Source: Podarcis liolepis
Lineage: Eukaryota
Strand: one strand, 5' to 3'
Assembly (NCBI GenBank): GCA_965112155.1
Contig: OZ218102.1
Length of the DNA: 64,000 bases
In this document: piece by piece, positions 6,387 to 50,604 of the stretch
Numbering within the stretch: position 1 is the first letter of the stretch
Layout of the letters: each line of letters starts with the position of its first letter
Made by a program: the position numbers and the translations under genes
Notes under the pieces: model-generated
What the model was told of the DNA's origin: nothing
The model's database searches: none
What the model saw: only the letters and a program-made list of their open reading frames with translations

Positions 6387-6911
<525 letters not shown>

Positions 6912-7044: not shown

Positions 7045-7344
7045 TTAAACAGAGCCTAGGGCTTGCCGATCAGAAGGTCGGTGGTTCAAATCCCCGCGAA
7101 GGGGTGAGCTCCCATTGCTCGGTCCCTGCTTCTGCCAACCTAGCAGTTTGAAAGCATGTCAACGTGCAAGTAGATACATAGGTACCGCTCTAGCGGGAAG
7201 GTAAACGGCGTTTCTGGTTCGCCAGAAGTGGCTTAGTCATGCTAGCCACATGACCAGCTCTCTCAGCCAGTAAAGTGAGATGAGCGCCGCAACCCCAGAG
7301 TCATCCATGACTGGACCTAATGGTCAGGGGACCCTTTACCTTTA
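7045..7344 (+). mobile_element. Sauria SINE (5'-truncated)
   Basis: B-box-like GGTTCAAATCCC, body shared with four other copies here, (TTTACC) tail. Confidence 0.85.
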
Positions 7345-15070: not shown

Positions 15071-15803
15071 CAACAACTTGGGATAGTGGAAAGGCTGAAC
15101 AAATGAGAACCACAAGGGACTTCATCCTCACTCTGAAGTATCAAAAATGGTTGATCGTTAGCCATGACAAATGGAACACAGTACACAAACACACAAAATA
15201 TCATATTTCAGTGGATAGACTTAGGTTTGTGGAGAACTTCTGCTGGCATTTGTAGCCCTTTGGGTCAATATATTATCTGAATATGAACTGTAAAAAAAGT
15301 TAATTAATCTGCTATTTATTTGTTGGTGTGTGTGATTCCTTGTGTCTCTAAAATCACTTTAGAGAACTAAATAGAACAGAACCACATTGAACACTTTGCA
15401 ATCTAAAAGGCAAGATTCTAGGAAGACCTCCTTTAAGATTACAAGTTTGCACGTTCTCCTATTATTTCAGATTGTCTATGCTGGTTTATGCAGATCCAAA
15501 GGGGCAAGATGATCCAAAGGGAGGGAAATGTTGTGGTACAGGTGATACAGCTTCCATTGGAAGCAGGATGCCATGAAGGGGAAGAAGTGACCAGAAGGGA
15601 AAGACTTACACACTTGATACTACATCTGTTCATGCAGTATTCATATACATTCTGTAGCTGCATGGTGGAATCCCACCAAAGATAAATACCTCTTCCGTCA
15701 CATGGAAGTGTGAATGGATCCTTTCTCATGCTAAAATGTGGTGGTAAAATGTAGCTGAATGCTGGGAGTAAACATATATGATATACCTGTTTATGAAAGC
15801 AGC

Positions 15804-15934
15804 TACAGATAGGTAGCCGTGTTGGTCTGCCATAGTCAAAATAAAAAAATTCCTTCCAGTAGCACCTTAAAGACCAACTAAGTTAGTTCTTGGTATGAGC
15901 TTTCGTGTGCATGCACACTTCTTCAGATACACTC
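15804..15934 (-). mobile_element. Short Penelope-like (PLE) non-autonomous insertion, copy A, with hammerhead motif
   Basis: Near-identical to 16290-16480 and 33298-33423. Flanked by 8-bp direct repeat AAAGCAGC (15796-15803 / 15935-15942). Carries a CTGAAGA...GAAAGCTC core on the minus strand. Confidence 0.75.
15893..15930 (-). ncRNA. Minimal type-I hammerhead ribozyme motif
   Basis: Minus strand reads GUAU-CUGAAGA-A-GUGUGCAUGCACAC-GAA-AGCU-C-AUAC: stem I GUAU/AUAC, conserved core, palindromic stem II, loopless palindromic stem III. Confidence 0.75.
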
Positions 15935-16289
15935 AAAGCAGCAATATTTATACAGGGTAGGTACTCTCTGCAGAGGGCAATAGAGAAACAGCCCCTTTGA
16001 CAAGATGCCACCTAGTCTCACATACCGACTTGAATAAAGAGTAATATCCTACTGCAAGAGGGACGCGAGTGGCGCTGTGGGTTAAACCACAGAGCCTAGG
16101 ACTTGCCGATCAAAAGGTCGGTGGTTCGAATCCCTGCAATGGGGTGAGCTCCTGTTGCTTAGTCCCTGCTCCTGCCAACCTAGCAGTTCGAAAGCACGTC
16201 AAAGTGCAAGTAGATAAATAGGTACCGCTCCAGCGGGAAGGTAAACAGTGTTTCATGTGCTGCTCTGGTTTCACTAGAAGTGGCTTAGT

Positions 16290-16480
16290 AGTAGATAGGT
16301 AGCCGTGTTGGTCTGCCATAGTCAAAATAATTCCTTCCAGTAGCACCTTAAAGACCAACTAAGTTAGTTCTTGGTATGAGCTTTCGTGTGTATCTGAAGA
16401 AGTGTGCATGTACACGAAAGCTCATACCAAGAACTAACTTAGTTGGTCTTTAAGGTGCTACTGGAAGGAATTTTTTTATT
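16290..16480. mobile_element. Penelope-like insertion, copy B (inverted arms), nested in a Sauria SINE
   Basis: 15-bp TSD TAGAAGTGGCTTAGT (16275-16289 / 16481-16495). Perfect 61-bp inverted repeat 16329-16389 / 16412-16472. Confidence 0.8.
16390..16427 (+). ncRNA. Minimal type-I hammerhead ribozyme motif
   Basis: GUAU-CUGAAGA-A-GUGUGCAUGUACAC-GAA-AGCU-C-AUAC; predicted cleavage 3' of C16423. Confidence 0.72.
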
Positions 16481-19400
16481 TAGAAGTGGCTTAGTCATGC
16501 TGGCCACATGACCAAGAAAAACTGCCTGCGAACAAATGCCAGCTCCCTTGGCCAGTAAAGCGAGATGAGTGCCGCAACCCCAGAGTCGTTCGCAACTGGA
16601 CTTAACTGTCAGGGGTCCTTTACCTTTATCTTTTTTTATCCTACTGCAACAGGCTTGAATGATGTTCCACTTCACCATTATAAATCCAGCTGGAAACATT
16701 AGCATAGTAGTCATTATTCATGAAGACTTGATGAAAGAGTCAAGGCACTTGCTATCATAATATATTTTATTGGTCAACCATCTGTGAGGGTGCTAAGACT
16801 TTTAAATGTAATAGAATCTTTCTAAAGCTCCAGCCTTTGTTCTGCCTCTGTGCATTGTTGGCAGAAAATAGCTTACCTAGCTGCATTCAGCCATCAACTC
16901 TAAGAAATGGCAACTTTTTTTCCGAAGGGAAATGGAAAGGGTGGAGGAGTTGAGGGTACTATGGTGACACAGATTGTCAACATGCATCATCAGCTATTGT
17001 TTCCAACAATAACACTGGCCAATCAGTCTGTCACTCAACCATCCAGGGAATATTATTATTATTATTATCATCTCCTTAACTAGAACGTCACCCTCCTTTG
17101 TGCAAGGGCCATCTAAAGTTAGAGAGGACACACATTTCCAGGTTAACAATATTGTTCTCTAGGAAAGTTCTTAGCTCCTGGTTGCCTGAACAAACAATGA
17201 GCAGAGTGTGCGTGTGTTTTCAGAATGCAGGCTACAACCTGACTATTTTAATGTTAGTGTGCTATGTTTAGAAAAAAACATATTATATTAACCCTTCTGT
17301 CCCTTGCCCATTGTAAATCTAAAATTTGAAGGGGAAAAAGAAAAGAGCTATTTGTAGACGTGTTCATTGTTGAATGAGTATAGAACCCAGTAGGGACCAG
17401 CTACAGCAATTTTCTCTAATTTTCTTTGGCTCACTTACTTGTTAGGATATCAAAATAGCATATCCACAAAGGATAGAAAGCTAAAACTCTAAAAACAGAA
17501 CATATTGGAGGTTTAATGGTCGACATACATTACGTATTACTTTTCCTTGGCAGTAATGTCCAGCACTCTAACAGAGAGCAGGCTAAGCCACACATTTGAT
17601 AGAAAGTTGGGTGATGTGAGTTCCCCAGACTCCAATCTGAAAACTGTGTTAAAACTGTAAAGGACGATTTCCAAAATGTTTCTATCCTTGCATGCTATTT
17701 TAATTCACATAATAACTAATCATATTTCTTCCTTTGATACATTATTGCAGGAATACATTATCAAAGCAAGTAAGGAGATGGGTAAATATTAGTCTATATA
17801 CCTTGATTTTTGCAAGGATAGAAAAATATGCATATGATTTGGGGAACGTCACAGAACTAATTTTGAGGCAAAGTTTGGTATGTGAAACCATAGGCAGAAA
17901 CTTGTCTTTCATCACTGATGGCACTTTCTGTTTAGGGCTGGTGAAATTTAAATAAAACATAGGGTGGCATTTGAATAGAATGTATGAAGCCTAAGATTTT
18001 TGCAAGATGTTAATATACACTTTAAACACTATTTTAAAAAGAATATAATAAGGGCAATATTTGTGTTTAGATGCTTCCAAGCTGGGTCAGTGCTGCACCT
18101 GTGTTTTTTGGGAGCAGGAATATACCAACATTTTGCACTGGCACATTAATATTTGCAAGACAGCAAGTATAGAGTTAGTATTGTTCATATTACAAATGAG
18201 AATATTTCAGTACAGAATAAGGAAGTGAAGTTTGTGTTAGTTTTTCACAGATGATTAATACTTCAGTTAAGAGCAGAACTCAGACGCCACCTGTGCAACC
18301 AACCTGCCTTGATCATAGCTCCACCTTTCCTCTAAGGTTAATGTGACTACAGGGTTTTCAGATCAATAGAACCATTAGGCTGCACTGGCTCTGTCTTCTG
18401 CGTAAAGGTATTGCAAGTCTTCTGCTTTAGATCCTTGCCAAATCAAAACACACCAACATGGGATCATTTAACATGTGTCAAGCTTGCTGCAGAAGCTTGT
18501 CCAAAGAGGCTTATTGTACTTTAGTAGTGCTGCTCTGAGAGCATAGTGAAGTTTTTGGGGGGACAGCTGCTTCTTCTTAACAGGCGAAGAGGATCAGGTG
18601 TCGATTAGTTGCTGTGTTTTGAATGTGAAGTGATTTAGGCGGAGGGGAAAATTGTTTCCATTATGGCAAGATGTTGAAATGGACATGGATGAACAGGAGA
18701 CCCTGGGACCAAAGTAAATCAACAGTTGACCTTCCACCTTTGGAGGTCAAAGATCAAACACAAACTATGGCTGATGTGAGTTCAGAAGACTCCAGACGAC
18801 ACCACTCTATACTTGGTGGGGTGCATTTTCTCTGCCCCTGCATATGTAATCTATATGAATGCAAGGAGGACTCTTTGGCCTAGGGGAGTGTGGTCCAGTG
18901 ACTGCTCACTTGGATGGGGCCTTTAATTGGCTATCTGATGGGATTTGTTCTGCTTTCCTCAGCTCCACCAGGAAAAAGTTTGTTCAGTGACTAGCTCTGC
19001 CAAGGGCTGGTTTCCTTTCTTTCCCACAAGGCTGGCAGCATATCTTCATGGCTGGGGACTGGGCATTGTGGACCCTGACTCTGGGCAGACTTCAGGCCTC
19101 ATGTGGGTAACAGGTTCCTTGCTATGTTTTGCTCACAAGTTACATCACTACTTGTCTATTACCTTCATGGGTCTTCTCCTTCTTTCTATTGTCTTTGCCT
19201 CTTGCTGCTTTCAAGCCTTTGTTCTCCTTTTAGCACAGGCTTTCCAACTCCATTCTTTTTACAAAGGTGCAATAACAACCATCTGGTTTGCCCTTGCCTG
19301 TGATTCTTGCTTCTTTCTCTGCAGAACTTCTGCCAGCATAGCTCTGAGTCACCAATCCTACAAAAATTTTGCTCATTGAGCCTAATCTGGTAGGAAGAAG

Positions 19401-19493
19401 ACATTCTGTGTACCCATCCTAATCTAGCTGACATACAATATGTGGGCTGGGCTCCTTTATTGTAAGTGCTGGACTCCTAGTGTGATAGGTTAG

Positions 19494-19803
19494 GTCCAGT
19501 CGCGGATGACTCTGGGGTTGCGGTGCTCATCTCACTTTATTGGCTGAGGGAGCCGGCGTACAGCTTCTGGGTCATGTGGCCAGCATGACTAAGCGAACCA
19601 GAGCAGTGCACAGAAACGCCGTTTACCTTCCCGCCGGAGCGGTACCTATTTATCTACTTACACTTTGACGTGCTTTTGAACTGCTAGGTTGGCAGGAGCT
19701 GGGACTGAGCAACGGGAGCTCACCCCGTTGCGGGGATTTGAACCGCCGACCTTCTGATTGGCAAGCCCTAGGCTCTGTGGTTTAACCCACAGTGCCACCC
19801 GCA
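19494..19803 (-). mobile_element. Sauria SINE
   Basis: Reverse complement of the same family; flanking direct repeat TGATAGGTTAG (19483-19493 / 19804-19814). Confidence 0.88.
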
Positions 19804-32064: not shown

Positions 32065-33297
32065 CACCCCCCCCCAAACAGACTTGTTGCAGTTTGGAAA
32101 GTAATAGGGAAATTCCCTGCAAAGTGTGGATTAAACAAATGGCAGGATGAATGATGGAAGGATGAATGCAATCTCATATAATTGTCCTGCAAACAAATCA
32201 GAAGAATTGCTCAACAAAGGCCAGGTATATTCTAACCTCCATGTAAGTTTTGTAAGCTCAATAAACTGGTCCACCCACCCACCCACCTGCAGTTTGCTAT
32301 TAAGGCCACAATCCAAAATCATGATGAATTAGAAATCTGTCTCACTAAATTCAGTGGAACTTACTCCTAAACTGTGTTTAGGATTGGAGCCAGCGTGTAG
32401 ATAAAACAGGGAACCCCTACAAACCCTGGCTCACTGAGAAGTGTTAACTGTATGATGTGTGAGATTTTATCATGTATGCAATTTTCAAATACCTGCTTGT
32501 CATAGTCACACTTCATGTTTTTTAGGAATGTGGGACAGAGAGACTTTTGAGCTGGAGCAGTATGGCAGCTCTCAGAGGAGGAGCTAGCTGTGCACCTGGG
32601 GGCGGGGCAAACTGCCCGTGGGGGCGAGGTGAGCATCCCAGGGGGGCAGTGAGGTGATGTCACCCCCCTCAGGGATGACACTTGGGGCAGGCCACACCCA
32701 CCACACCCCCTTTCTCCCCCAGTGGCAGCTCTTACCTGTAAGAGAAACCAGTTCATTGAAAGAGACCATATTTGTCCCGAAAACCTGACAAGAAAATTAG
32801 ATAGGTGACATAAGATATTGGAATCAAAGAAAAACAATTGCCTCTGTTAACTGCTTCACACAGTCTAGATCTCTAAAACTTTTCAGTCCGCTGCTTGTCA
32901 AATGTACTGAATGCTATTGGGCATTTAAGCCTTAGTACCTTGACAGCTAGTTCTAAGGCTCCAACACTGCAGCACAGGACTCTGATTTTGGTGTTAGAGG
33001 ACCAGAGGACATTTTGCTGCTTGAAGTGAAGAAGAAGAGGGTACCCACAAGATTGGTAGTTGAGTCTTATTTGAATGCTGGCAGTAGGATGGTGTCCCTC
33101 ACATGCACAGGCAACCTGGTACTTCGCACCCTCAAGCACCTGCCACCTGAGGTGACTGCCTAATGATAATCACAGCCCCCTCTTTTACAACTTCAAAACA
33201 GTTGTGTGAATCAGTCTGGAAATGCCCAACATGCTCAGTGGAGATCAAATCAACCCACAGTTTTCCATGCTAAAAAGGTGAGGCAAATAATTACCCA

Positions 33298-33423
33298 AAA
33301 TAAAAAATTCCTTCCAGTAGCACCTTAAAGACCAACTAAGTTCTTAGTTGGTCTTTAAGGTGCTACTGGAAGGAATTTTTTATTTTGACTATGGCAGACC
33401 AACACGGCTACCTATCTGTAACT
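33298..33423. mobile_element. Penelope-like insertion, copy C (palindromic, hammerhead lost)
   Basis: 14-bp TSD CAAATAATTACCCA (33284-33297 / 33424-33437). Perfect 45-bp arms 33296-33340 / 33343-33387. Same sequence family as copies A and B. Confidence 0.8.
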
Positions 33424-34471
33424 CAAATAATTACCCATCATTCTTTGGCAAAGAGAAGAAGAACCACCCAGAAATGGTAACTTTCAGGTCTGAATTGTTG
33501 GGCCTTGCCTTGTTTTCTCGGAGTCACACATGGGAGTTAGGGTGGGTGGGAAGACAGTATGTGCAGCAACCAAAATGTCCCCTAGATTTGAAGAAACGGC
33601 CAGCAAAGTCCACAGTGACATGCAACCAAGGGGAGGCCATGGAGTAATTTAAGCAGGAAGTTAATATCAGGAGTCAGAGTAATCAATCTCTGTTTCCCTG
33701 AAATGGCGTGAAGGAGGCAAATAAAAGTTCGGCACCTGATGTAGGCCGGCAGCTGAGAGCTGCCTGGGCTTCCCCTCCCTTTCTTCTCTTTCTGTGTCAT
33801 TCTCCTCAGCGCCTCCATTCATCACACTGTCACTGTCCTGTTCGGGCTTCCCCTTGTGCCTAACTTGTCTTGGAGCTGATGGCACAAATTTAATTTGTTA
33901 CAGGCGAAGGAGGGGCGAGCAGAGCCTTGCCTGGGGCACCATTGCTGGAAGCCGTGTCAGGCAGACGTATTGTTCCTTAATGGTGACTGGCTGGTGCTGG
34001 AGGAGAGGTGGTGGCACAGGAACACTGCTGATTAAATTAAAGCAAGTTGCTTCTTTTTTCATGCTGGAAGTAGGTGGCTTTTTGGCCAGGAGACAATAAC
34101 TTTGGAGGCAGATGCTCTTTTGGAAGCCAACCAGCCATTAATATTTATTAGGTGGCTCAACAACTAGCGCTCTGGTGTTGTGTTAGCTTTGTGATCCTGA
34201 GCTGTCACTCTGCTTTTGGGATGTAAGAGGAGCTTTGCAATTACAGGCATTGCAAGCGGTGTGATCCCGTCTATGTTTGCTCAGAACTACCCAGAAACAA
34301 ACCCCTCTTTTCTGCAACAGGCTTACTCAGTAAAGAGTTTCTTTATTATTACCTTTTTATCCCACTTCCCTCCCAGGAGCTCATGGTGGCATACATGAAC
34401 CTCACCTTCTGCATCTTATCCTCACCACAACCCTCTGAGGTAGGTTAGTTAGATTAAGAGAGAGTGATGGG

Positions 34472-43000: not shown

Positions 43001-43168
43001 ATGAGGGAGTGGAAACAACTTAATAAATAGGGTGAGTGGCAGAGGAATGGGAGTCAGATGTTAGAGAGGGATGACGGGCTATCAGTAAGCTGCCACACAG
43101 GGGAGCAACTTGTGAAGTGGGGAAGCCAAGGGGGGCTATTCAAAGCTAGAGAGGTGGAGAGTTTTAAA

Positions 43169-43517
43169 GGTAAAGGTAAAGGGACCCCTGACCCCCACCA
43201 GCCGTGACCGACTCTGGGGTTGCGGAGTCATCTCGCTTTACTGGCTGAGGGAGCCGGCGTACAGCTTCTGGGTCATGTGGCCAGCATGACTAAGCCGCTT
43301 TTGGCAAACCAGAGCAGCGCACGGAAACGCCGTTTACCTTCCCATTGGAGCGGTACCTATTTATCTACTTGCACTTTGACGTGCTTTCAAACTGCTAGGT
43401 TAGCAGGAGCAGGGACCGAGCAACGGGAGCTCACCCCTTTGCAGGATTCAAACCGCCGACCTTCTGATCGGCAAGTCCTAGGCTCTGTGGTTTAACCCAC
43501 AGTGCCACCCGCGTCCC
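43169..43517 (-). mobile_element. Sauria SINE, full length
   Basis: (GGTAAA)n tail on + strand; 14-bp TSD TGGAGAGTTTTAAA (43155-43168 / 43518-43531). Confidence 0.9.
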
Positions 43518-46500
43518 TGGAGAGTTTTAAAAGCAATGGTTAAAAGCTAGAAGTCGATGGATGCAGAGCACGATAGGGAGCTACAGTAAAATCTTAGGAT
43601 GAGGTGGAAGGCTGAGTACTTAAGACGAGTGCAGGTGGATAAGATCATCTAATCCAGCATCCTGTTATCCCAGTGGCCAGCTGGAGAACAGGGTGTTGGA
43701 CCTTTGGTCTGATCTAACAGGGCCCTTCTTAACCTCACTCCTCTTCCCATTCCTCTGCTGTGCTGCCTTCTATCCGTATTCAAAGACATTTTCAATTGAC
43801 TGGGAAAGGAATAAGTGGTAGTAGTAGGGAAAGCCAACAAGAAGTAATAATCAGGATGATGTTTAATGCATATTAATCCCCTTGTATAGCTATATTTATA
43901 TTGTGCTGTTAAATCTCCTTGAAGTTAATGGGGACTCTGCTCACTGGTTGGATCACCTCCAGATTAAGCAAGTTAAACAAGACTTAATTTAACATATATA
44001 TTTTTAATGTTGAATGGTGCAAAATCAACTGTGTGATTAATCTCATGGGAAGTTGTAATGGCAAGAACAAAGACAATGTAATCTATGTCAAGGGGAAGAT
44101 TGGTCACAACAGCGCATGCAGGCAAAACCAATTGGAGCTCATCCACACAACTAGCCCAAACTGGTTTAATAGTCATTCCCTCTGCCAGGAAGTCCTGGGA
44201 ATTGTAGATCTTTGTGCAGCTGAGCCAAAAGTACTCCCTGTGTTTAGTGAACATTGTTAGAAAAATCAAGAAGATCCCCTCCCTTTATGGTTTCTTTTTC
44301 TGGCTGTTCCAGAATGATCGCCTCTTGGATGGAATTAACTTCATTTGCCTTTAGTGATGTAATAATGTAGCTGAATCTGATTGGAAGCATAGTATAATGC
44401 TACCACTATATTAACTTTGTTAGGATCAACATGTGTCTAAACCAGAAAACATTGCCTTCTCCCTGAATTATATTTACTTCATTATACAAGTATTTATAAA
44501 TTGCCTTTGGAAGGTTGTATATATTTAGTTGGTGGACTGCGTTAAACCTGCCTTTTATATGGATTAATGTGGTGTGTGTTGTTTTTTTTTTTAAATGATT
44601 TGGTTTTCATATTTGTACTACTGTACTTTGTAAGTCACTTTTGATTACCTTTTGTAAAGAAAAACTACTAATAAGTGCAATTAATAACAATTATAATAAT
44701 CTCATTAACATATTTTGATGTGGAGCAATAAAATAATTAAAACATCATAAAACTGTGAAATACAGAGAAAATGACCACCACTAAATCAAATCAAATTGAA
44801 TTGAATTTACTCATTTGTTTGTTTGTTTGTTTGTATATTTATTACAAATATTTATAACTCTGCAAGGCAATTCAGAATCAATCTGCAATGAGCTTTTGCT
44901 TTTTGAAATGTAACCAGTTTCTCAAGAAGCACTTTACAGGAGTAAAACATATGCAATAGATCTAGACTGTGTGTGGACTACATGGGGGGGGGGAGAGAGA
45001 ACTCAGTCTCCATTGATTTCAAAATAAAATGTCGTGTGTACAGTCCCTGGTTGCTTTGCTCAGCTGTTCAGGGCACTGCCTAATGTTAGTCCCCTTGGCT
45101 ATTAACTTGGACCTGCATTTCTGTAATAATATCTTTTTTCCAAAAGAGTTAACCTAGACCATCCTGCTAGGCCTTGGAATGGTCACAAGGCACTCATAAG
45201 AAGAATCACAAATCCCCATCTCAGCCATAATAGCTCTCAAGTTATGCTGGGCTTGTATTTGTACCAGTGATCTGCCAGCGTGAAGCTTTACATAGTATTC
45301 CCCAGCCTACTGCCAGAGAAATCCAGTTATCCATCACAGCTATTTTTATGGACAGGCAGAGGGGAACTTTGACAACCACTCACTGCTGTTATCAACAGGT
45401 GTATATGGTTATTAAAGAGACTTCAGATACAGCCAGGCTTAGCAGGGTGGGAATGGACGAGGCTTTGGAGATGAACTTCAGCAAGCATTGTGCCAGCATC
45501 AATTTGCACAGATAGAGCCATAGCTGGACTTTTAATGGTTGCTTAAATCCCCTCTTCCCATGTCGCCTGCTAAAAATAAACAGCTTAGCCATGAAACACC
45601 AGCAGAACAGTTGGAATAAATACTTAATTCTACAATCCTAAGCATTCAGACTTGGGAATGTCCCATTAAACTCAGGGGGGCTGACTTCTGACTGAAGCAA
45701 ACATTGATAGGATCACACAGTTAGTTCTCCTTAAATTTTTTGATGTGTGAATTACACAAGTGCAGCACTGTAAACAAAACCCAGAAGGAAGCTCAAAGGA
45801 CTGTATAGTATTTTTAAAAATCATGCAGTGTCCCTTTCCCTTACTTACAAAGTTAGACAGACACACACCATATCATATCTGTATTATTTCAGGAGGCCTT
45901 TTCACCTTGAATGCTTCTCAAATGCCCTCCATTTTGTAAATACATATATTTATATAGATAGGATTTTAAATTCTTGAAGAAAAAAATAAAAAAATGGAAA
46001 CATAAATAATGTTTTTCTTGTATATTTTATTCTAAGCAGCTTTGGGACTTACATGGCAAAAAGTGGGATATAAATTTTTAAATAAATATAAACAAACAAA
46101 CAAACAGTGTATTACAGTGACCTTATTTGCACTGACAGGATTTGCCGTGGCAGCTTGTGACACTTAAGTCAATTTTCTACCTCCTCAGTAGTATGATACA
46201 TGTTAGATATTACTGCTATTCTGTTTTTGTTTGTTTCATTGCAATTACGATTATTTGATTTCTTTGTTCTCCATTATGATTCATGGGTGAAACAATAACC
46301 ACCAATCAGCACAAGCAGGGCAACTTATACAACAGGTATATTTTGTATACATAAAACATAATACATGCTGTCTTGAGCTCCTATGAGGAAAGGCAACTTA
46401 TAAGCAGAGTCTTATTTTTATTGGGCAGCAAAGCAGCCTCTGGAGGCTGAGGTTTTCAGTGGTGGAGCATCTGGGGAGGGGCTACTTAACCCTTTCCCTT

Positions 46501-49715: not shown

Positions 49716-50604
49716 CAGTGCCGGATTTACGTATAAGCTAGACAAGATATAGCTTAGAGCCCCACTCTCTTGGGGGCCCCCAAAAAAATTAAAGGAAAGA
49801 AACCTGGATGTACATTTCCAAAATATAAGATAAAAAACAAATAAAATAAAGCCTACATACAGCAACAGTGTTTTGTGTTGTGTAGGCTCCTATGATGTAA
49901 GTAATGATGCAAGCCTGCTAGCCTGCTCCCTAAAATATCACTGGTTTGCTCATTTCTATATACAGGGTGCCTACATTCTGCATGGACTGTTATGTGCAAT
50001 TGGCTTTAAAAGGTAAAGGGACCCCTGACCATTAGGCCCAGTCGTGACCAACTCTGGGGTTGTGGCGCTCATCTCGCTTTATTGGCCGAGGGAGCCGGTG
50101 TACAGCTTTGGGTCATGTGGCCAGCATGACTAAGCCGCTTCTGGCGAACCAGAGCAGCGCACGGAAACGCCGTTTACCTTCCCAATGGAGCAGTACCTAC
50201 TTATCTACTTGCCTTTTTATCTACTTGCTTTGACATGCTTTCGAACTGCTAGGTGGGCAGGAGCAGGGACCGAGCAACAGGAGCTCACCCCGTCATGGGG
50301 ATTCAAACCGTCGACCTTCTGATCGGCAAGTCCTAGGCTCTGTGGTTTAACCCGCAGCGCCACCCATGTCCCTTTATATGCAGGCACCCTGTATATATTC
50401 TATATACAGGGTACCTACATTCTGCATGGACTGTTATGTGCAATTGGCTTTAGGTACCTATAATTAGGTCCATAAATTACCATATAGTATATATTCAACA
50501 CACAAAAACAGCAACAAATTGTTGTTGACAAAGGAGAGCTGGACATATAAAGGACCCATTACCTTCAATAGCTTAGGGCCTCATCAAACCTAAATCCAGC
50601 CCTG
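49716..50604. mobile_element. hAT-like non-autonomous DNA transposon
   Basis: TIR CAGTGCCGGATTTA / TAAATCCAGCCCTG; 8-bp flanks TGCACACA / TGCACAGG. Confidence 0.7.
50009..50372 (-). mobile_element. Sauria SINE nested in a hAT-like element
   Basis: Same family; flanked by a 55-bp duplication (49954-50008 / 50398-50452). Confidence 0.9.

Follow-up and report, generated by a model that had tools for sequence, protein, structure and literature searches.

A window of 64,000 nucleotides, one strand of contig OZ218102.1 in the genome assembly of the lizard Podarcis liolepis (GenBank GCA_965112155.1), holds two copies of a 38-nt motif that resembles a hammerhead ribozyme, each of which is embedded in a short insertion. 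The question raised by this locus is which kind of mobile element produced these insertions, and whether the ribozyme takes any part in their spread. A sequence-only reading of the same DNA had assigned the two motifs to minimal type-I hammerheads of the Penelope-like kind, carried by a young non-autonomous family that is mobilised by a Penelope-like element (PLE). According to the analysis presented here, the two insertions, together with a third copy that the earlier reading did not include, are very young and probably represent dead-end insertions that derive from the 5' leader of a Penelope/Poseidon-type retroelement, which would have been made by PLE-type target-primed reverse transcription with the hammerhead carried along passively.

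Both motifs were recovered exactly at the two sites of the sequence-only reading (Table 1). In the sense orientation, the motif of copy A reads GUAU-CUGAAGA-A-GUGUGCAUGCACAC-GAA-AGCU-C-AUAC, and the consensus of the two copies is GUAU-CUGAAGA-A-GUGUGCAUG(C/U)ACAC-GAA-AGCU-C-AUAC, where copy B differs from copy A by a single C>U in helix II that retains a G-U pair. The catalytic core, composed of C3-U4-G5-A6-N7-G8-A9 and G12-A13-A14 with H17 placed after U16.1, is exact in both copies. Helix I is an open stem of 4 bp (GUAU/AUAC), an A is bulged after A9, and helix II (GUGUG-CAUG-CACAC) has the at least 5 bp expected of it and is closed by the G10.1-C11.1 pair. The positions 15.1-16.1 are occupied by AGCU, a loopless palindrome by which helix III can be formed only in a dimer. 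From this layout, the cut in copy A is predicted to fall between 15897 and 15896, and the nucleotide C16423, after which cleavage had been placed in the sequence-only reading, is indeed C17 of copy B.

A strict descriptor of the motif demanded that helix I have 4 bp and be followed by CUGANGA and, optionally, a bulge; that helix II comprise at least 4 bp with a closing G-C pair; and that GAA, a palindromic A-NN-U and H17 come next. This descriptor matched two sites in the 64-kb window, namely those of copies A and B, and none in 300 dinucleotide-preserving shuffles, on the basis of which a chance origin of the motif was rejected; a rough analytic estimate gives less than one chance match per 2-Gb genome. 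The two hammerheads count as one evolutionary event, because they belong to one repeat family. None of the Rfam hammerhead families was matched, either at the gathering threshold or at E values up to 10, which is to be expected from a motif without a helix III hairpin, and the Rfam output on copy B consisted only of spurious microRNA-hairpin matches that were caused by its inverted arms.

The minimal hammerheads of metazoan PLEs have been described as possessing a short helix I, a long helix II, a G10.1-C11.1 pair, an unpaired nucleotide after A9, and a palindromic helix III (15.2-16.2) that has no loop and requires a dimer; most of the motifs occur singly, or in pairs on opposite strands at a distance of 100-700 bp, within truncated copies, and the class has been reported in reptiles including turtle and snakes (Cervera & de la Pena 2014, PMC4209133). 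Copies A and B display all of these features, although the sequence family is its own, and the identification of the motif as a minimal type-I hammerhead of the PLE kind is thereby supported, as the earlier reading had proposed. Since hammerhead-bearing truncated PLE insertions are an established class, the ribozyme call alone adds little.

Table 1. Coordinates of the three insertions and their parts in the 64-kb window.
Feature	Position	Strand or orientation	Basis or remark
Copy A, 131-bp insertion	15804-15934	-	alignment, empty-site contig
Copy A left TSD, 8 bp, AAAGCAGC	15796-15803		sequence
Copy A right TSD, 8 bp	15935-15942		sequence
Copy A tail, PLE-type, 34 nt	15804-15837	-	loose ends, about half depth, arm alignment
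Minimal type-I hammerhead, copy A	15893-15930	-	descriptor search, folding
Hammerhead positions, copy A (first part)	G2.4 = 15930, C3 = 15926, G8 = 15921, bulged A = 15919		
Hammerhead positions, copy A (second part)	G10.1 = 15918, C11.1 = 15905, G12 = 15904, A15.1-U16.1 = 15901-15898, C17 = 15897		
Copy B, 191-bp insertion	16290-16480	inverted head-to-head arms	TSD, host SINE comparison
Copy B left TSD, 15 bp, TAGAAGTGGCTTAGT	16275-16289		within tRNA-derived SINE
Copy B right TSD, 15 bp	16481-16495		sequence, SINE comparison
Copy B minus-strand arm	16290-16389	-	5'-truncated within hammerhead (start ACACGAAAGCUC); tail 16290-16323
Copy B plus-strand arm	16390-16480	+	complete hammerhead; ends in T-run without tail
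Minimal type-I hammerhead, copy B	16390-16427	+	C17 = 16423; descriptor search
Copy C, 126-bp insertion	33298-33423	inverted arms	same family, without hammerhead
Copy C inverted arm	33298-33342	-	no tail; ends in T-run; 5'-truncated downstream of hammerhead
Copy C sense arm	33343-33423	+	tail 33387-33423; no hammerhead
Copy C TSDs, 14 bp, CAAATAATTACCCA	33284-33297 and 33424-33437		sequence

Copy A represents one complete sense unit without an inverted arm, in which 5' GAGU is followed by the hammerhead, a 54-nt spacer, a T-run and a 34-nt tail at the 3' end. In a 904-nt contig from another sequencing run (DNA run X1), position 15795 is followed directly by 15935, with 8 letters of ambiguous placement, and 15796-15934 is skipped; this is a precise empty site, which reveals copy A as a presence/absence polymorphism. 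The 5' boundary of this copy lies 4-7 nt upstream of stem I, in agreement with the earlier estimate of about 4 nt. The first three letters of its right TSD (AAA) also match longer family members, indicating a 3-nt microhomology at the 5' junction.

Copy B turned out to be composed of two inverted arms placed head to head, a structure that had escaped the sequence-only reading. The break between the arms falls inside the hammerhead, and the plus-strand arm begins at stem I with 2-4 nt of microhomology to the minus-strand arm. The insertion interrupts a tRNA-derived SINE, which runs uninterrupted across the site in four other copies of the window (...AGAAGTGGCTTAGT|CATGCTGG...). The SINE copies, located at 16058-16620, 43166-43518, 19489-19802, 50009-50373 and 7049-7344, are 78-84% alike. 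The claim that the motifs reside in TSD-flanked insertions devoid of an ORF is thus confirmed by the empty-site contig for copy A, the continuous SINE for copy B and TSDs of 8 and 15 bp, and no ORF was detected in these two TSD-flanked copies. In copy C, which belongs to the same family, the arms break at a small internal palindrome.

Alignment of the five arms (one from A and two each from B and C) revealed a common order of a few-nt leader, the hammerhead, the 54-nt spacer, a T-run of the form T7-A-T4 and a terminal stretch of 34-37 nt. In both copies B and C, the tail is present on one arm, while the other arm ends in the T-run. The constant 3' ends combined with variable inner ends mark these arms as products of reverse transcription, of which the hammerhead-bearing strand is the sense strand. 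The three copies share 94-100% identity with one another, and this likeness, together with the polymorphism of copy A, supports the view that the insertions are very young. The T-run itself differs in length, being T7 in copy A and the plus-strand arm of copy B, T2 in the minus-strand arm of copy B and T6 in copy C, and insertions of +1 and +3 were seen in the reads at 15842 and 15843-15849; the copies therefore do not share a common reading frame across the T-run. In addition, the stretch at 14651-14689 matches the unit spacer weakly, with 80% identity over 41 nt and an E value of 0.006, and may be either an old relative or a chance similarity.

The near-palindromic, TSD-flanked form of copies B and C could also recall a MITE, that is, a DNA transposon with terminal inverted repeats in which the hammerhead-like motif is accidental. 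It is hardly conceivable that such an element is responsible, considering that copy A has no inverted arm, that the arms of B and C are unequal with different internal breakpoints, that only the 3' side has constant ends, and that the motif is far beyond chance. Mapping to a DNA transposon would, according to the sequence-only reading, have refuted its proposal; the termini do not point to such an element, as copy A lacks terminal inverted repeats and the TSD length varies (8, 14 and 15 bp).

For a view of the whole family, 15700-16040 was compared with DNA contigs of one set, with the contigs of a second set that is probably RNA, and with the raw reads of two stranded RNA runs. The region of copy A was matched by 6,773 DNA contigs, and the summed word depth reached about 1.6-1.8 million over the unit, whereas it was 12.2 in the flanks, which are single-copy. 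This summed depth is not equal to the copy number, yet combined with the presence of three copies in 64 kb it points to a family of roughly 10^4-10^5 copies. The depth is flat over 15856-15915 and then falls sharply, which shows that the unit is discrete rather than randomly truncated.

Two classes of 3' ends were found among the best-supported loose ends, one at 15804 that includes the tail and one at 15837/15838/15843 that does not, so that the two sites lie 34-40 nt apart and the tail of copy A corresponds to the stretch between them; the depth over the tail is about half of that over the unit. Among the same loose ends, one class of 5' ends is located at 15930/15932/15933 with unrelated flanks, and the own 5' end of copy A (15934-15937) lies 1-4 nt beyond this cluster. 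A second class continues past 15937 into a conserved 30-mer, the agreement being 0.91-0.94 among RNA reads and 0.57-0.72 among contigs. Read in the sense orientation, this 30-mer contains TATATAG, the first T of which stands 30-31 nt upstream of 15933/15932, while the box is about 33 nt upstream of stem I. To judge from the end positions and this single 30-nt loose-end consensus, the 5' ends of the short units at 15930-15933 sit where a start site directed by TATATAG would fall, and hence would represent the transcription start. The TATATAG-bearing 30-mer is absent from the 64-kb window, and no further or longer family copies were matched in metagenome, viral and prokaryote-genome collections.

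Inverted joints between opposite strands are numerous in other copies of the family, and one partner often lies at 15930-15937, which fits a structure like that of copy B with one arm reaching the RNA 5' end and the other cut short. A joint that goes back by 63 nt occurs in a few contigs and reads, and suggests occasional partial tandems.

These ends can be compared with the known behaviour of PLEs, whose insertions are hallmarked by strong 5' truncation, an abutting inverted and 5'-truncated copy, and a tail of 30-40 bp that is often restricted to one end (Craig et al. 2021, PMC8557442). Copies B and C share this architecture of 5' truncation, inverted arm and one-end tail (Evgen'ev & Arkhipova 2005; Craig et al. 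2021, PMC8557442), and the departure from a typical PLE consists in the small size of the window copies (126-191 bp) and their lack of both a pLTR tandem and an ORF. The presence of the published end signature, namely two 3' ends 34-40 nt apart, an adjoining inverted arm and a tail at one end only, argues that PLE machinery made the insertions, although the argument relies on signatures and not on sequence shared with an autonomous PLE.

A closer parallel is provided by Poseidon_Ac (PAc) of the anole Anolis carolinensis, where reverse transcription was found to begin inside the RNA at two sites that bound the tail, 111-118 nt from the start of the ORF, and where cutting and extension affect both strands of the DNA; the hammerhead of PAc overlaps the start codon, its cleavage requires protein, and no RNA-seq reads end at the ribozyme cut site (Frangieh et al. 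2024, PMC11167929). The supplement record of PAc reads CCU-CUGAGGA-U-(helix II)-GAA-ACGU-C-AGG and has a TATA-like box about 45 nt upstream (PMC11167929). The family described here resembles PAc in the succession of a TATA-like box, a hammerhead with an AUG in or at helix II, and about 60-120 nt leading to two reverse-transcription sites that bound a tail of 30-40 nt. In the lizard family, the AUG occupies the loop of helix II (15912-15910), and the tail end lies 109-113 nt downstream of it, to be compared with the 111-118 nt of PAc. The two systems also agree in the priming of both DNA strands, which is deduced here from the arms, and in the lack of RNA reads ending at the cut site. On the other hand, helix III is AGCU rather than ACGU, the bulged nucleotide is A rather than U, and the AUG stands within the helix II loop with its frame closed by a TAA in the window copies. 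No similarity between the unit and the PAc record was apparent by eye, and short string searches were blank but unreliable owing to the 10-letter block spacing of the record. The value of this locus lies in its anatomy: three clean and very young insertions, one of them still polymorphic, display in a natural genome what the in vitro experiments of 2024 on the Poseidon element of the anole had led one to expect, namely two alternative 3' ends separated by a tail, and arms joined head to head through priming on both strands.

On this comparison, the following course of events may be proposed. A reverse transcriptase/endonuclease encoded by a PLE would nick the target, and reverse transcription would begin inside the RNA, either in the U-run or 34-40 nt further on, the tail being the stretch between the two starts. 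The cDNA would then run through the hammerhead to the RNA 5' end, a few nucleotides upstream of stem I. Where both cut DNA strands prime, two cDNAs would meet head to head and be joined by microhomology, which would generate the inverted arms of copies B and C and leave the tail on one arm only. In a multi-unit transcript of the parent element, the hammerhead may cut after C17, either as a dimer or with the assistance of a protein.

Whether the short units sustain themselves is a separate matter, and it was on this point that the sequence-only reading held up only in part. Its description of the insertions as young and ORF-less agrees with the data, one insertion being polymorphic and the window copies 94-100% alike, and so does its attribution to a PLE. 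A separate family with a life of its own is not supported as stated, in view of the promoterless units and the longer TATA-bearing copies. The short units are devoid of the TATA box, which is located upstream of their 5' ends and occurs in longer copies only, and this position implies that they should be dead on arrival and that their sources would be the longer copies. They are more simply read as dead-end cDNAs of the 5' leader of a longer parent than as a self-sustaining family. Within the window, no reverse transcriptase or GIY-YIG domain was found in ORFs of at least 130 aa, no YxDD or GIY..YIG motif in any of the six frames, and no pLTR-type tandem repeat at 15500-16800.

A self-sustaining non-autonomous lineage, SINE-like or retrozyme-like, which has non-coding masters of its own and is mobilised in trans by a PLE, would offer another account of a unit that is discrete, extremely abundant and without an ORF. 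In line with it, a recent preprint argues that the ribozyme-bearing repeats of vertebrates derive from PLEs, are not autonomous and have a relationship to pLTRs (Li et al. 2026 preprint). The reading frame speaks to the same point: the frame that starts from the AUG of stem II is the only long one, and it is open to the unit end except for a TAA at 15885-15883 in copies A and B. Position 15885 carries the stop letter in about 55% of the family depth and a non-stop letter in about 45%, and the share with the TAA leaves room for a non-coding master, of which there may be at least one. Against such a lineage stand the promoterless state of the short units, the lack of tandem arrays at 15500-16800, and the Rfam result, which recognised no tRNA, 7SL or 5S head in the unit; on the whole, we regard it as rather unlikely. 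A Pol III SINE was considered as well and rejected, as the unit has no head derived from tRNA, 7SL or 5S and holds a T7 run.

The possible activity of the hammerhead was assessed by folding and by the reads. The 38-nt segment alone folds into helices I and II at -6.8 kcal/mol. In the folding model, a nested double hammerhead is feasible but weak (-11.1 kcal/mol), and it is outcompeted by the MFE dimer (-30.6 kcal/mol), where the palindromic helices II of two molecules pair as a 14-bp intermolecular duplex, though thermodynamic folding is not decisive for hammerhead activity. A transcript of copy B would form a hairpin of about 66 bp (-115 to -124 kcal/mol), in which the motif would be buried.

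Neither a pile of read starts or ends at 15897|15896 nor a step of depth at this place was seen in the two raw RNA runs. Of the RNA reads, 97-98% continue beyond the unit into flanking sequence that is unrelated, with about equal coverage of the two strands, which indicates that the RNA is mostly read-through from host or longer transcripts. In the DNA contigs, the hammerhead sites that vary at 5% or more are the two of the CpG pair (G12>A, 13%, and C11.1>U, 11%) and C17>U (11%). Sites variable at this level amount to 3 of 38 in the hammerhead and 7 of 89 outside the motif, which is the same density, and the family is too young to show constraint. The hammerhead is probably carried passively and is most likely inert in these solitary or fold-back copies.

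An active role would be expected from a non-LTR retrozyme, in which RNA transcribed from tandem units would be cleaved at both hammerheads and closed into circles, from which new DNA copies would be made. In metazoan non-LTR retrozymes, the units form head-to-tail arrays, carry canonical hammerheads and give rise to circular RNAs (Cervera & de la Pena 2020, PMC7229834). The present units share with them the small non-coding form, the type-I hammerhead and a presumed dependence on PLE enzymes (PMC7229834; Li et al. 2026 preprint), and both the dimer-requiring helix III and the few joints that go back by 63 nt could be taken in the same sense. Nevertheless, the copies are dispersed as singles or fold-backs with no tandem array around A and B at 15500-16800, the hammerhead is the minimal PLE type and not the canonical one with interacting loops, and the insertions end at the reverse-transcription start sites rather than at the cleavage site, where no read ends. 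A retrozyme cycle is therefore considered very improbable, and the derivation from the leader of a Penelope/Poseidon-type parent remains the preferred one.

It is possible, though we would not yet call it probable, that this derivation can be stated in a more definite form, in which the units of about 95 bp and about 131 bp are leader-only cDNAs. The PLE enzyme would bind the 5' region of its own TATA-driven mRNA, start reverse transcription about 70-113 nt from the AUG of stem II and run off the capped end after about 100-130 nt, thus producing, with no need of a separate master, a SINE-like cloud of stubs that lack a promoter and number about 10^5; the stubs, which are often fold-backs, would then become a major substrate of A-to-I editing in the transcripts of the lizard. 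If this is true, the locus would provide confirmation from a natural genome of the two start sites of reverse transcription and of two-strand priming, which were seen only in vitro in 2024. Moreover, if the sharp 5' end is the transcription start, PLEs would mostly yield tiny leader copies, and such a preference would account for the large number of PLE hammerheads in the genomes of animals and for the solitary state of most of them.

A strand-specific A>G signature, present in RNA only, was noticed family-wide at 15867-15895 when the reads were compared with copy A. T>C changes occur only with the first mate on the plus strand (15867, 15868, 15879, 15883, 15887 and 15894), and A>G changes only with the first mate on the minus strand (15869, 15880, 15881, 15885 and 15895). 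They reach 8-29% of the RNA reads compared with about 0.1% of the DNA contig depth, and every putatively edited A has U or A, never G, as its 5' neighbour. This pattern fits ADAR A-to-I editing of double-stranded RNA that arises from inverted copies. Alu pairs are known for their role in the RNA editing of primates, and the signature suggests that the stubs take a similar role in this lizard.

Two further features of the window were recorded. A tRNA-like match of 57 nt at 958-1014 on the minus strand scores 34.3 bits against the Rfam tRNA family with the T-arm region reduced to 3 nt, and is probably a SINE head or a tRNA pseudogene. An uninterrupted ORF of 148 aa at 6422-6868 on the plus strand matches Pfam Ribosomal_S9/S16 with an E value of 4.9e-22, and probably arose from a ribosomal protein gene as a processed retrocopy.
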